Below, piece by piece: positions 13,227-21,798 of a stretch of 64,000 nt of DNA. The DNA is from Trichosphaerium sp. ATCC 40318 (lineage: Eukaryota; Protista; Tubulinea). Every line of letters starts with the position of its first letter. Position 1 is the first letter of the stretch. Below the pieces are notes generated by a model. That model saw only the letters and a program-made list of their open reading frames with translations, ran no database searches and was not told where the DNA came from. The DNA lies in contig JALMLS010000466.1 in the NCBI GenBank assembly GCA_038496445.1, forward strand, positions 620,001 to 684,000. Reading direction: 5' to 3'. The position numbers were made by a program, and so were the translations under genes.

Positions 13227-14859
13227 ATGAAACGTGTTAGTACTCTACCAAGTACAATACAAGAAGTTAGGAGCCAAATCAAGCGTGTAAGGTCATGTTT
13301 TAAAGATGTACGGCTTCATATCGTTATTTCACAACCAATTTGCGTTGTAAACGCTTTGTACTAGTTTTCTTAATGTTCACGTAGACAAACGATAAATACG
13401 GTGTGTTTATTTCAGAAAGTGATGAAGTTCGTTTTAGTAGAGTCGAAAAAAGCGTGAACGGCTGTGACTCATTTCCTGAGAATCAAAAACTATTTGGAGT
13501 ATTGGTAGGTGTTAAAGATATTTTTCACATTAATAACTTTGAAACACGTGCTGGTAGTAATCTAGGTAAGCACCCCTTCGCATCACGTGCCTTATAAAGA
13601 AAACTCTATCATGCTCATAGTTACAATGTAGACCCATCAATTATTAAAGGAGAAGAAGGTTATCTTGTAAAGACAATCAAGAAACAAGGTTGCATCATTA
13701 TTGGTAAAACGCACACTGCTGAATTCGCTCACATGAAACCTCCTATTACTTTGAACCCTAACAATACATTGTACTCGCCTGGAGGATCTTCTTCAGGATC
13801 TGCTGCTGCTGTATCTTTAGGATTATGCAACATTGCTTTGGGAACTCAAACAATTGGATCTATCATTCGTCCAGCTGCTTATTGTGGATGTGTAGGTTTT
13901 AAACCTACTGCTCACCGTATACCACCTGATGGCATTGTTAATTTCTCTCCTACAATGGACACTCTTGGTTTCTTTGCTTCTAATGTATCTACAGCAATTC
14001 AATTTGCTCAAGTTGTTGTGCCTGATTGGAAGAATGAAGTCCAACCTAAAAAAGACATAGTTTGTTGTAAGTACTATGACTCAATGCGACTGAGTGTTCT
14101 TATATTGTTATAGGTGTACCTACAGGTCCTTACCTTGATAATACTGATGAAGATGCACTTGTTGTTTTTAACAAAGTGGTTGATGGGTTGATTTCTTCTG
14201 GTGAGCTCACAGCACATAAACAAGACCCATTTATTGATGACAACGGAAAATCAATTTTTGATGAAATGGTTAAGCATCACAAGACGATTATTAATGGTGA
14301 AGCAGCACAGGTGAAAATTCAACATTGCACAGTTTCTCACTCTAATATTTAGCAACATGATGAATGGTTTAGGAAGCATGAAGAATTGTACAGTCCAGAT
14401 CTACAAAAAGCACTAAAAGAAGGTCAAAAAATCTCACAAGAACAGATTGAATCATCATTGGTTTTTAGAAATGAAATGCAATCAAAGATTTCAAAAGAGA
14501 TGACAAAAGACGGCATAGACGTTTGGATATGTCCTTCAGCTCCTGGACTTGCTCCTCTTTTTAGTGCCCAAACTACAGGTAACCCATGTTGTTAACCTTT
14601 TCCACACAAGTGCCAATGCATTAGCATGCCCACCTGTTCAAGTATCCGACTGTGACATAATTGTTAACGTTGATTAGGTAATTCTATAATGAATTTGCCA
14701 TGGACACATTTAGGATTTCCTGCTATCTCTATACCTTGTGGTTTAGATAAAAACACACGCCTTTCATATGGTCTACAGATAATAGGAAATACTGGCTGCG
14801 ATGAAGAGTTGTTACAGTTTGCTTCCCGTATTGAAGATACGCTCAAACACTTAATGTAA
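13227..14859 (+). CDS. Amidase signature family protein (GatA-like amidase)
   Basis: VGVKDIF, GKTHTAEFA, PGGSSSGSAAAVS, GTQTIGSIIRPAAYCG (Ser-cisSer-Lys triad motifs), WTHLGFPAISIP. Confidence 0.9.
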
Positions 14860-15112
14860 AATGCTGATCCACGTGCGATGTGTATATCTCAAACGCGCTG
14901 AATGGTTGCCCAGCATTAGTTCAATAACAACAAGTTGTCCTTTGCATTATTTTAATTGCATTCAATTGTCGAAAGTTTGGATGGCTTTAAGGCCGACTAA
15001 AAATATGCAGTTAAGCCAGTGCCTACGCTTCTCAACCCAAATTCACCTCAAGCTGTCTTTACTGTCTAAATTATAGATTACTGCGCCCTTTATTTTATCG
15101 TAAGCTTACATA

Positions 15113-16144: not shown

Positions 16145-19100
16145 ATGGAGCTCATAGCTTCTAATGCAGAGTGTGTATTCGATTTAACGTCTTTTCGTTA
16201 CAATTGTAGCGTTTACGAGTTTCTTGCAGGTATGCCTTTTCTACGTCGCTTTTTGGCCGTTTTTATCTATACAGTCGCGTCACAGACACTAAATACACGT
16301 CTAGAAATAACAGTTGAAGCACAATTTTCAAATAACGCTAACAGCATCGTAAGAGAGGCAACAGCCACTTTCCCATTGACACAAGGTACGTTGATCGCAA
16401 ACAAACCATGTGAAATAACGAGAAAAAAAGGTGCAATTCTTTACTCTTATGAAATTGATCTCGATGGCTGTATGGTTCCTGCTATTGTCGTTCCTAAAGA
16501 AGATGCCAAAAAAGCTTTTGATATAGGCACGTGTTTTTTTTTTATAATCGAGTATTAGGAGCGGTTTCCTGCTGTTTTTTTCTAACGTTATTTTCATAGA
16601 AACTCATCGAAATACAAGACGTCAGTTGTCAACGCTTGAGTCTGTTCAAGGAAACTTATTCAAGATTAAACTTAATTGGACGAAACCTGGTACAATACGA
16701 ACAGTAAGGCTTCATTGGATAGAAAAGCTTGTCAGGTTAGTACTGTCAACCATAATTCTCCGTACAAACAATATGCTAACAGTTTTGTTTAGAAAGGGAA
16801 ACAATTACGTACTTGACTTGATAGGCAATGATAAAGGCAACTGTGAGATAGACGCAAAAGTGACGAAGTATCATCAAACTATGGATGATTTGGCATTGCC
16901 AATATTGATGACGGGAGACGATGATATGGTTTTTAACTTTGTACCACAGGTACACATACTAATACCCTTACGTTTCCAAGAAGACTATTAACCTGTGTTC
17001 GTACTTAGAATAATTCGTGGATTGGGATTCAAGAATCAACGTTCTGTTTAACAAAGAACGACATGTTGAACGTTCCTTTGTTTCGGTTAGCATTACCATC
17101 AATGACAACATCGATATCAGCACAGAGCGAGAATCTACAAGATAAAACAACTTACTTTTGTGCCTACAACACAATACCAACATCAAAATTTGAGATTCAA
17201 AAGAACGACAAGAAAGAGGGTAAGCCCTATATGTTTATCCTTGTTAATTATTTGTTGTTAGGATTTATTGGTATATCCTGGCCTATCGGTAAGTCATATA
17301 AACAGTATCAAGATGAAGATTTGAGAGTACTACGAACTGTTCTGCATTCAATAAGAGATCAAGCAAAAGGATTCGATTTATTCCTTTATCACGTGCAAGT
17401 TGGAGTAATTCAATCGTTTTCAGCTCATCGCATTAGTGGTATTATCTCGGTACTTACCCTTTTTATCTTATACACCTTTTAATTAACTGTTCAACTACAG
17501 GCGATAAAGAAAAGTCGATGTGATGGTGGTATTGATTTATCAAAGTTAGAGTTTCGAAAAGATCGTTGTGTTGGTTCTTTGAAGACACAGTACTCCTTTC
17601 ATGTACTGTTTAGTGATGGTATATCTACTTTTGGTAATAAGAAAGCTATGTCTGAAGTGATTGAAGCACCAGTGCTTGTTATTACAAACAGGTCAACGAG
17701 CAACATTGTCACTTTGAAGAAGATTGCAACTAAAAGCAGAGGTTTCTTTCTTGATGCAACAAAACTAAGCTTTCAATCTGACTGTGCGTAATGAACTCCT
17801 TTTTCTTCAACATATTTTCGTGTCTTAACCTCTTTTTTATAGTGAGCACTACAATAAACCGATTAAATAGCGATCAAGAAATCTTATTGACAAGGATTGA
17901 TCCTTCAACTTCAAACTCTACAATTAAACGTACGTTTGTTTGTTGTGAGCTTGTACGACCTCTATTGATTAACTTATAGTTTACCCTCAAAAAAGAGCTA
18001 CAGTTTATCCTGAGATGTGGTACGTTGGAAAGATAAAGAATAAAATCAACAGCCAGACAGATAAGATGAATCTAGATGAAGAACAATCAGAACTTACAAT
18101 ACAACTACAGTTTGGTTCTAATGGAGAAAACCTACATAAATCAGAATTTGTGATTAACATTTCACGCTGCAAACAGCTGTTCGATTGCTTACAACGGTAT
18201 TGGATGTATGAGCGCGTTCAAGATATCTTACAGCAACCAGACGTTGATTCAAGAAAGGTACACATAAGAGTTGCTTCGTGATTGAGACCTCGCTTACTTA
18301 CTTTTTTTAAGGATACACTTGTTAGTATTGGTAAAGAGTTTGGTATTCTTTCTCCGTTTACATCATTCATTGTTATGAACTCTCTTGATTTATTCGTCAA
18401 GCATGATATAAGACCTCCTGAGAGTATGGCGGATATTAGAAAAAAGTATGATGATATTATAGAGTCGAAAAAGTTATCAGAGCAAGATGTACTTAGAAGG
18501 AAAATGGAACCACTTCAAGGCTTCTACCAAAGGTACTTTGTGTTTGCATGTTTCGGCTTTTTTTCTTACTTTTGTTCAGGTTGCAAGTACTTTCAACTTC
18601 CGGACCAAGGCAATCCACAACGCAAGAATTGACGTTTATGCCTTATGATGAATCTATCAAAGATACTTATAATAGAAGTTTCTTCAATGCACATGGTCAA
18701 AACTGGAAAAAGTCTAAAAAAAGGAAACAAACATTTGCTATTGAAGACCAACCACATAAGCAAAGACGCTTACTTAGACCTGATGAAGCAGTACCTTTCC
18801 AAAGTATTGGATCCAGATTAATGATGGCGATGGGATGGTCACCAGGAAAAGGCCTTGGAAAGAAAGAACAGGGTGTAACAAAACCATTAGAAGTTAAGCA
18901 CAATCGAAACCTTGGACTTAGTGTTGTAAGAAATGATAAACCAGATGTTGACCCCGTCCCTATGGATATCGAAACAGGTTTATTTACAGAAAAGATACTT
19001 GTCAGTAAGAAGGCTAAAAGAGTAAACTACGTTGGATGTCTATTGGGACCAAGGTAAACTTAACAGCGTAATTTTTTATCCACTTTACTTAACACTTTTT

Positions 19101-21798
19101 AGAGGGTTTACCAAAAAACAAATAGAAGCAGAAACTGGCGCCAAGTTTATCATTAAGGGCACTAGTATGACTAAAGGTTATGGTGATACATGTGACGAAG
19201 CGTATGTCACTGTTACTGGAAAGAGCGAAAATGAGGTTAAAGCTGCTACTCTAAAAATAAAGCAAATATTAGAATCATGTGCTAATGAGGACGCTTCAAT
19301 GAACCTTCACAAACGCCATCAATTAAGACAGCTTGCAGAAATAAATGGAACATTACGACTTGAAAAGCTTCCAGAGCCCAATCATGAGGACTTCGCGCCT
19401 TATATACCACCGCCTCTTATATTAACAAGAGAAGAAAGGAAGAAACTTAGAAAGAAATGCAGAATTGAACAAAGCAAGGAAAGTAGTGATAAAATGGAAC
19501 CAAGAAAGCGCTGTCGTAGAGGAGGTCGTAGATCTAGAAAATTGAAAGAGCGATATTCAAAAACGGAACTAGTACGTTATAAAATAACTAGTAAAGCACT
19601 ATCTTCTCAACAATTTAATTTCCACCTTTAGGAAGCGTTAAAAGGCCAAAGAATTCCTTTTGGGTTAATTGGTTCTACCAATATCACCACCAAAACCACA
19701 AATCAGCATGCCGAAGAAATTGTTGTCACTACTACCAGCCCGTGGGAACAAAAACATGCTGCTTTCGACACCAACACAAATTATTTACATCTTGAACCAA
19801 AACAAATAGACAAAATAATGTACGTACCAATACACCCACGTGATATAAAGAAACTGATATTTCTATTTTAGGAATACTCCACACCAAGGTAAAGACCACA
19901 TTTCAATCAGTGCGTCAGAGTTACGTTTACCATCAAACATACTTGAACACTACATAAAGTACATCAGTGAAGATACAGGCGTTTGTATACTGTATGGGAG
20001 AGTTGAGTACAATACACTTGTAAGGTATATTTGTATACCCAAAATTGATGGCGAGAACCTCGTTATGCCGAGCAACGTAAGAACTGAGACTACTATGAGT
20101 TATTTTCTAATTATTTACTTTATTCTAGGTACCAAAAGAGATGGAGTTTATCGGCCTACTTACAAACGACATGTCTCTTGAAATTGATAGTATCAATAGC
20201 ATTCTTAAACGTACGTTTGGTTACATCTCTACGTTTTTTTAACAGTACAAAAGGAATGGATGTTGAAAATGATATACCCCTTGTTGTTATAAATAACAGT
20301 GCTTACTCGCAATCCATCAAAACATACCTTTTACCAAAGGAGTACGTAATTTTGTTTTCAGAAACTATTTCTTTTTTTAACAAAACTTGTAGTGGTATTG
20401 TAGATGATTCATGGAGGGATTGTGTGAAAAGTGCGATGTCGCAGGTAGTCAATAATGAAAGGGGTTATTTCTTGTACCCTGCAATTACGAAATGGAACGT
20501 ATATGGCGCTCAAGGTGAAGAAGAATATCGCATAGGTACTTTCTACACATTCTCTTTTTTTTCACACGTCATACTAGGTTTCCCAATGCCTGTTGTCAAT
20601 TGTACCGCATGTGCGCCTTTGTCCAAAAATATGAATTTAATGACTAGGAGGTAAAGTTTAAACAAATTTATTGCATTTTATGACACTCTCTTTAGCTTCA
20701 AGTATTGTGTATCGTATCCAACAGCTTGTGGTGCAATTTGCTTTAACAAACAAACCCTCACTCCATATTATGACTATGTTAATGTACAAAACGAAGAAAA
20801 GTCCTTAGATCTATACTACGAAATCTCAAGGCCACTCAACACACCAGACAACGCTTTTTACTTAGTACGTACTACCTGATTAAACGTTTGACTTACTGTA
20901 TTAGGACACGCTTACTTTACTTTCTCAACACCTTTCTCTTGATGAGCAAGTTTGCATCTTATCTAATGTCAGTGCTCAAATAGATAACGTATCCAACATT
21001 GAAGATCAAATTCAGATTGTTGCATGGAAGCTTGAAGAACTAGGACTTTTTGAAGAAGCTATAAAACAATACAAACGACTTAATATGAAAGACCCTTTGG
21101 TTGCATGGGGTTTACTTCATGTACTTCAATCGTCAGATGTTGATCATAGTTATGATATAGTAGCTCTATTGAAAGGTATTATTGAACAAAATCTAGATGA
21201 GAGATTCGCATACAAGGTACACACGTGTTAGCAACAATTATTTTAACCATGGTATGCCTTTAGATTGACGTTTTTTCAATACTGGAGCTTGCAAATATCT
21301 TATGGCACTTGAACACCATGAATGTTGATACAAGAGATTTATATCAATCTATTACTTGTACAAATCCTTTTTTAAGAGATTGTGTATGTTTCCCAATACA
21401 AGTAGACTTGAGGTACTCTATTACACTTTTGCAAAAAAAACTAATAATTTTTTAGGATATCTATCACGTGGAGTTCACCTGCTGACTTGGATTTGATTGT
21501 AACTGAACCAAATGGAGAAAAGTGTTACTCAATGCATAACCAAACATCTAGTGGTGGCCTTCTTGCTGGTACATCAAATTACAAGGGTCCTGAAGAGTAT
21601 GTTATAGGCACAGCACAGAAGGGAATTTATGAGATTCATATTAAATGCGCAAGTGCTATTTCAAAATCGTCAATAGTAGCCTGTCTCAGAGTGTGGAACA
21701 AATATGGCTATGAAAATCAATCAACTTGGACACATGTTCTATGTGTTTCTTCCAAAACCAAAGATACTGTACATGTAGCAAACATATTAATTGATTAA
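16145..21798 (+). CDS. Chimeric VIT-vWA-[G-patch, SF1-type KH-QUA2, Prp3-like helix, Prp8 Jab1/PROCT-like]-TPR-like-DUF2135(YfaP) protein
   Basis: VIT: EATATFPLTQGAILYSYEIDLDGCMVPAIVVPKEDAKKAF. vWA: CDGGIDL, VLFSDGISTFG. Family motif GILSPFTSFIVM..KHDIRPP. G-patch ~18800-18925. KH-QUA2 ~18980-19362. DUF2135: DLRISITWSSPADLDLIVTEPNGEKC..GGLL..GPEEY. The exon junctions I checked are in frame with GT-AG. Confidence 0.8.

Follow-up and report, generated by a model that had tools for sequence, protein, structure and literature searches.

Prp8 is among the most conserved proteins of eukaryotes, and the VIT-vWA proteins include the ITIH heavy chains, PARP4, and VWA5A. To our knowledge, a variable middle made of host-protein fragments and a distinct C-terminal exon have not been described for the ITIH heavy chains, PARP4, or VWA5A. 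In Prp8, a 2024 cryo-electron microscopy study assigned the β-hairpin of the linker between the RNase H (RH) and Jab1 domains to residues 2038-2067, and in the human B complex this hairpin binds a loop of SNU23 and the U6 small nuclear RNA nucleotides of the helix between U6 and the 5' splice site (PMC10943123). Among published ideas, the one nearest to our findings is that of integrated decoys in plant immune receptors; certain of these receptors include a vWA domain, e.g., the wheat tandem-kinase-vWA resistance protein Pm57 (PMC11153570). Here we describe a VIT-vWA scaffold gene of the amoeba Trichosphaerium sp. ATCC 40318, which carries a Prp8-derived module in its middle. The gene lies in a stretch of 64,000 nucleotides (assembly GCA_038496445.1, contig JALMLS010000466.1, positions 620,001 to 684,000), which is called the window below and to which all coordinates refer unless a contig is named. 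The module probably serves as a displayed mimic rather than as a second Prp8, and for the statement as a whole, namely, that a Prp8-derived module stands in the array of this scaffold and acts as such a mimic, we consider the balance of the data slightly favorable.

The published Trichosphaerium draft comprises 70.87 Mb in 710 scaffolds, with a GC content of 37.7% and a mean intron length of 75 bp (PMC10521059). Our genome-wide searches covered an assembly of 70.3 Mb in 642 contigs, and searches, folding, and domain scans were run exon by exon. In this genome, the host PRP8 gene on contig C63 is the sole match to the PROCT domain (2e-46). An earlier note, made from the letters of the window, had claimed an eroded copy of the Prp8 C-terminus outside PRP8 and had quoted three groups of peptides from it; all three were recovered on the plus strand, where and in the order claimed, spread over four short exons (E1 to E4; Table 1). 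Residues 16 to 41 of E1 were identical to the host PRP8 sequence TAVTTKSINKHGDEIVVTTTSPLEQQ at 17 of 26 positions, and none of 1000 shuffles reached the score of E1 against host PRP8. The genome-wide search with E1 gave one match beyond E1 itself, and this was PRP8 (E 9.8e-5). Besides, phmmer against the PDB returned four Prp8 chains (best E 4.7e-5), and hhalign with a profile built from 32 C-terminal fragments of Prp8 gave a P of 1.3e-9.

E2 aligned, always at the collinear place, to the Prp8 segment that follows (HIYVSSDD..LPKNILKKFI..LYG). Its hhalign P was 0.0016-0.0018, with none of 200 shuffles as good, and its scores were reached by 3 of 1000 shuffles with a HMMER profile and by 19 of 1000 with Smith-Waterman alignment to host PRP8. 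The language-model neighbors of E2 that bear names (UPF0172, JAB, and Prok-JAB; scores 0.82-0.90) all belong to the JAB/MPN clan, which is a lead and not a proof. For E4, three methods concurred on a marginal match to the Prp8 profile (P about 0.06; 15/200 and 56/1000 shuffles), the score against host PRP8 was reached by 17 of 1000 shuffles, and the match was confined to ERGYFLYPAITKWN against FLGYFMVP..WN, at the distal position where it was expected. When E2 and E4 were combined by hand with Fisher's method, the result was about 0.001. Folded alone with AlphaFold2, E4 gave an unusable model (predicted local distance difference test score, 47.5), and its ESM Atlas features held nothing usable. 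No above-chance match of E3 to Prp8 was found by host alignment, hhalign, or profile shuffles, nor was any similarity to the C-terminal tail of Prp8 seen after the WN motif in the host alignment or with MAFFT. With MAFFT --addfragments, E1 and E2 fell where expected, whereas E4 was split and E3 landed in a different place; the placements of E3 and E4 are set aside here. On these comparisons, the homology to Prp8 is certain for the linker, probable for the first part of Jab1, and no more than suggestive beyond it. Sequence comparison demonstrates that the module derives from Prp8 and supports a strongly diverged copy, collinear with the C-terminal region of Prp8 and located outside the PRP8 gene.

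The conserved island of E1 ends directly before the first residue of the crystallized Caenorhabditis elegans Prp8 Jab1 chain, which places it at about human residues 2038-2064 by our own offset estimate. Since the published hairpin spans residues 2038-2067 (PMC10943123), what was kept best is the linker hairpin rather than the domain that binds Brr2. The earlier description of the module as a duplicate of the Brr2-binding domain must therefore be corrected, because what is well kept lies just upstream of that domain. The island occupies the same position as the hairpin of human B-complex PRP8; here, in contrast, it stands on a VIT-vWA scaffold beside islands derived from PRP31, PRP3, and SF1, and binding to SNU23/U6 is only putative. 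At the DNA level, 54 of its 78 positions are identical to host PRP8, and the third base is the same in 8 of the 17 codons of identical residues. We also observed that the copy reads TTKTTN.H at 19677-19700, as does Prp8 of other species (e.g., PDB 8xi2_A), and host PRP8 reads TTKSINKH; the copy may thus preserve an older state than host PRP8 at this site.

Compared with the C-terminal region of Prp8, the order of segments is the same, the hairpin is 65% identical to host PRP8, profiles detect the start of Jab1, and a possible remnant of FLGYFMVP..WN is left; the copy differs in lying in another gene, in a Jab1 body below Pfam detection, and in an undetected tail. These features bear on whether the module might be a Jab1/MPN paralogue that is functional, evolves fast, and still binds Brr2 and regulates it. 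The collinearity of the weak matches across the Jab1 region would agree with such a paralogue, as would the language-model features of E2; however, it is the linker hairpin and not the Jab1 body that was conserved, the body having sunk below detection by Pfam and phmmer, and the C-terminal tail of Prp8 left no visible similarity. Moreover, the module sits among four other spliceosome fragments, on a scaffold whose paralogs carry unrelated fragments. A role of the module as a Brr2 regulator is unlikely, and we judge a paralogue of this kind very unlikely.

The module is not a hidden, separate gene; in our gene model, it is one of five spliceosome-derived modules that form an array within the VIT-vWA scaffold gene. 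The Prp8-like exons are the last recognizable unit of this array, which is composed of a G-patch, an SF1 KH-QUA2 region, a PRP3 island, a PRP31 island, and the Prp8 region, and our confidence in this identity and architecture of the module is high. The vWA and post-vWA regions of the scaffold (17483-17788 and 18282-18530) matched five or six paralog loci by tblastn at 1e-5 to 1e-10, and an intron of 47 nucleotides (18533-18579) connects the scaffold in frame to the G-patch exon. Like the ITIH heavy chains, PARP4, and VWA5A, the gene has a VIT domain at its N-terminus (Pfam, 1.1e-6), and after this comes a region that resembles the vWA part of its paralogs; it differs from the ITIH heavy chains, PARP4, and VWA5A in the long variable middle of host-protein fragments and in a C-terminal exon common to the paralog family only.

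Table 1. Features of the scaffold gene and of paralogous loci; exons and introns are as predicted in the gene model, lengths are in nucleotides (nt), and positions in paralogs are counted within the contig segment given in parentheses
Feature	Position	Strand	Remarks
VIT domain of scaffold	16253-16555	+	Pfam 1.1e-6
Exon with G-patch and first half of SF1-type KH domain	18580-19053	+	G-patch, Pfam 3.2e-14
Exon with rest of KH-QUA2, PRP3-like island, and PRP31-like island	19103-19571	+	PRP31-like part RRGGRR.RK.KERY..TEL
SF1/BBP-type KH-QUA2 island			16/19 identical; host gene on C27, Pfam KH-I_KHDC4-BBP 2.7e-15
PRP3 island			16/29 identical; host gene on C126, Pfam PRP3 8e-57
PRP31 island			Prp31_C model matches only host PRP31 on C11 (3.7e-15) and the window site
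Exon E1	19632-19819	+	Encodes TTKTTNQHAEEIVVTTTSPWEQ; first ~12 codons are the end of the PRP31-like island (..EALKGQRIPFG)
Exon E1, codons 16-41	within 19632-19819	+	Prp8 linker-hairpin island (coordinates in next row)
Prp8 RH-Jab1 linker hairpin island	19677-19754	+	26 residues
Exon E1, remainder after codon 41		+	Weak alignment to Prp8 'TN-LHL..I'
Intron after E1	19820-19871	+	52 nt, GTACGT..TTTTAG, phase 2; no intron here in host PRP8
Exon E2	19872-20076	+	Probable degenerate Jab1/MPN start of Prp8; encodes LPSNILEHYIKY..ILYG..VRYICIPK (HISISASE..LPSNILEHYI..ILYG..VRYICIP)
Intron after E2	20077-20128	+	52 nt, GTAAGA..TTCTAG, phase 0
Exon E3 (VPKEMEFIGLLTND..)	20129-20214	+	Encodes PKEMEFIGLL; Prp8 homology not demonstrable; ends at 20210 if GTACGT donor is used
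Intron after E3	20215-20245	+	31 nt, GTTTGG..AACAG
Intron after E3, second in-frame form	20211-20253	+	43 nt, GTACGT..AAAAG; stronger donor; both forms equally possible
Exon E4	20246-20535	+	Possible worn distal Jab1/PROCT half; encodes ..IPLVVINNS..IKTYLLP..ERGYFLYPAITKWN; marginal match
Intron after E4		+	42 nt
Two small Cys-rich exons	20578-20650, 20696-20864	+	Last part of variable insert
Scaffold resumption	20905-21798	+	Helical region, then C-terminal exon 21448-21795 and stop codon
Paralog C224 (23500-33499)	2608-4607	-	Histone fold (Pfam Histone 1.4e-9)
Paralog C10 (732000-741999)	2480-3121	-	Near-complete H4-like fold
Paralog C29 (270000-279999)	5518-7882	+	PH, protein kinase, and AGC C-terminal region (Pkinase_C)
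Paralog C87 (131500-141499)	2351-4870	-	About 14 RNA polymerase II C-terminal domain (CTD) heptads (Pfam 9.4e-18)
Paralog C5 (291500-301499)	2223-3233	-	SKIP/SNW domain (1.6e-14)

The two Cys-rich exons that close the insert (..NCTACAPL.. and ..YCVSYPTACGAICFN..) had neither a Pfam match nor a source gene in the genome; they could be a further, unrecognized module. Likewise, no paralogs of E2, E4, or the Cys-rich exon were found in the genome besides one chance-level match on contig C7. Upstream of the scaffold gene, at 13500-14900 on the plus strand, lies a neighbor that by eye looks like an amidase-signature enzyme (GGSSGGSAAAV motif).

Because the third codon positions of the hairpin island differ from those of host PRP8, the island appears to be old and maintained at the protein level, and recent gene conversion as its cause is ruled out by the same differences. 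In the other islands, third bases were shared in 4 of 16 (SF1), 8 of 16 (PRP3), and 5 of 9 (PRP31) identical residues. The codon comparison demonstrates that short islands were conserved at the protein level despite scrambled synonymous sites. The window is AT-rich (about 36% GC) with very short GT-AG introns, and the introns of the proposed chain are all GT-AG and 31-60 nucleotides long. When codons were walked across the proposed junctions, the predicted chain at 19103-21225 was stop-free over 609 codons, a length that, at this GC content, excludes a decayed pseudogene for the chain as modeled. It might still be argued that the array is neutral filler, i.e., that a tolerant linker took up host gene fragments, which persist merely as a spacer, the islands being functionless leftovers. 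Against this stand the 55-84% identity of the islands within near-noise flanks with scrambled synonymous sites, the reading frame open for so many codons, and the composition of the arrays, which are themed and not random, even though the Prp8-like body is mostly eroded to about 20% identity and the module borders ignore exon borders, with the PRP31 and Prp8 islands abutting in the middle of an exon. We regard filler as decidedly unlikely.

Exon structures give some indication of how the modules arose (slashes mark junctions). The Prp8 homology begins exactly at an exon start of host PRP8 (Q/TAVTTK, phase 0), and the same point in the copy is in the middle of an exon, fused to the end of the PRP31-like island (..RIPFGLIGS/TNITTK). 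In this region, host PRP8 is interrupted by a single intron (after ALSDNK) and the copy by three or four, which are extra or differently placed; no intron position common to the copy and host PRP8 was demonstrated. The KH module shares an intron (GPR/G, phase 2, 19053/19103) with the SF1/BBP-type gene of the host (about 1397/1500 within the segment compared from contig C27), and the following intron of the latter (before NEHKR) is missing in the copy. Since the KH module keeps the position and phase of the host intron, at least this module seems to have been copied as genomic DNA and not as complementary DNA, and a retrocopy origin of the whole array is unlikely for the same reason. The intron of host PRP31 lies six codons earlier than that of the copy and in another phase. 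We also note that the PRP31-like island (19503-19667; RRGGRR.RK.KERY..TEL/EALKGQRIPFG) extends over an intron and meets the Prp8 island within an exon.

The C-terminal exon had 16 matches in the genome, 12 of them below an E of 0.03, pointing to at least 12 paralogs. We compared six paralog loci with the scaffold gene: in each, the post-vWA region and the C-terminal exon lay on the same strand 1.9-4.8 kb apart, and in none was similarity to the insert of this gene found. The intervening regions held other cargo (Table 1). The paralog with a histone fold also has a (GKGLG)n..AKRHRR run like an H4 tail in repeated form and a peptide (RKPHRFRPGT) that resembles H3, the kinase paralog has four F-x-G-F-T-Y copies resembling a hydrophobic motif after its kinase region, and the paralog with CTD heptads also has runs of RS-dipeptide, RGG, and GFG repeats. 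The SNW paralog contains three SRWD motifs, which resemble the ULMs of SF3B1. Position and strand are the sole grounds on which we assign these inserts to the transcripts of their scaffolds. The comparison, made at the level of the genome sequence, demonstrates that the gene belongs to a variable-insert family, with pieces of differing core nuclear or signaling proteins at the same position. Two matches to the C-terminal exon (C142:137988-138104 and C416:8049-8165) scored identically and are each interrupted by in-frame stops; a single broken family member present as two haplotigs could explain this pair.

The cargo of the paralogs also helps in weighing a pathogen-free role as a host-side adaptor or sponge, in which the array would bind the partners of its source proteins and thereby sequester, transport, or buffer splicing factors. 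Putative partners would be a DEAH helicase for the G-patch, branch-site RNA for KH-QUA2, and SNU23/U6 for the hairpin. Every retained island does come from a segment through which its source protein is known, or likely, to interact, and the islands are under protein-level constraint, but what the paralogs carry at the same site differs widely (histone folds, CTD heptads, an AGC kinase, and SNW). Such variety is easier to reconcile with display or bait as a general logic than with a dedicated role in splicing, and we consider a sponge unlikely.

We prefer the reading that the module is a displayed mimic. The scaffold would display a mimic of the PRP8 hairpin, which would act as a bait or decoy for any factor that binds the hairpin of PRP8 or modifies it, be it a pathogen effector or a host partner such as SNU23/U6, and the scaffold would then sequester the factor or report the event. 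Pathogen effectors are candidate targets because giant-virus gene traffic has been reported for Trichosphaerium (PMC10521059). We offer this bait mechanism, which is modeled on the plant decoys, as a tentative possibility. Integrated-decoy receptors (plant nucleotide-binding leucine-rich-repeat receptors with integrated domains [NLR-IDs] and Pm57) likewise have a host-target-like domain fused into a larger scaffold and a domain repertoire that varies among paralogs. On the other hand, no NLR or kinase signaling module is present here, the host is an amoeba, the insert consists of several short fragments instead of one domain, and an immune role would follow by analogy only. Our literature search turned up neither a Prp8 fragment located outside PRP8 nor a display family of this sort.

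Several results weigh against a Prp8-derived, displayed mimic. None of the exons matched the Pfam models JAB (PF01398) and PROCT (PF08084), JAB being searched at E<=1. The claim of an eroded copy of the Prp8 C-terminus outside Prp8 is supported in part: a collinear and diverged copy is real, but neither Pfam model detects it in any exon. The label Jab1/MPN-PROCT rests on a modest profile match to about the first 45 residues of the domain and a marginal one near its end; E3 has no match, and the tail is unseen. The linker and the Jab1 start do match the Prp8 profile, which speaks for the claim. Further points of the same kind are that phmmer against the PDB found no Prp8 chain with E2 or E4 (Mdm2, which it returned for E2, is a chance match only) and that the hits of E4 by phmmer among 1.84 billion representatives were four highly repetitive proteins, whose summed weak repeats make them artifacts; E4 itself was not found among these representatives, so no public protein model of the gene exists there. 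On single exons, the vWA had no Pfam or NCBIfam match, the label DUF2135 for the C-terminal exon was confirmed by neither database, and NCBIfam gave no match on the scaffold and the Prp8-like exons. The exon chain is a model in which the intron after E3 has two possible forms, selection is argued from 58 codons in all, and the bait function rests on analogy.

By keeping the hairpin that contacts SNU23/U6, selection would have singled out a peptide of 26 residues as important for function even away from its usual context. The histone, RNA polymerase II CTD, kinase, and SNW pieces of the sister genes add to this, and jointly they support an undescribed "display" protein family, which could be a decoy-type defense or a system buffering nuclear factors and which yields concrete peptides for partner tests. 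A bolder extension, that VIT-vWA proteins are traps displaying mimics of essential nuclear machines and that the SNU23/U6 contact of the B complex is an effector target, appears doubtful at present. If true, it would amount to decoy immunity of a new kind in eukaryotes and would point to an unrecognized point of attack on the spliceosome.

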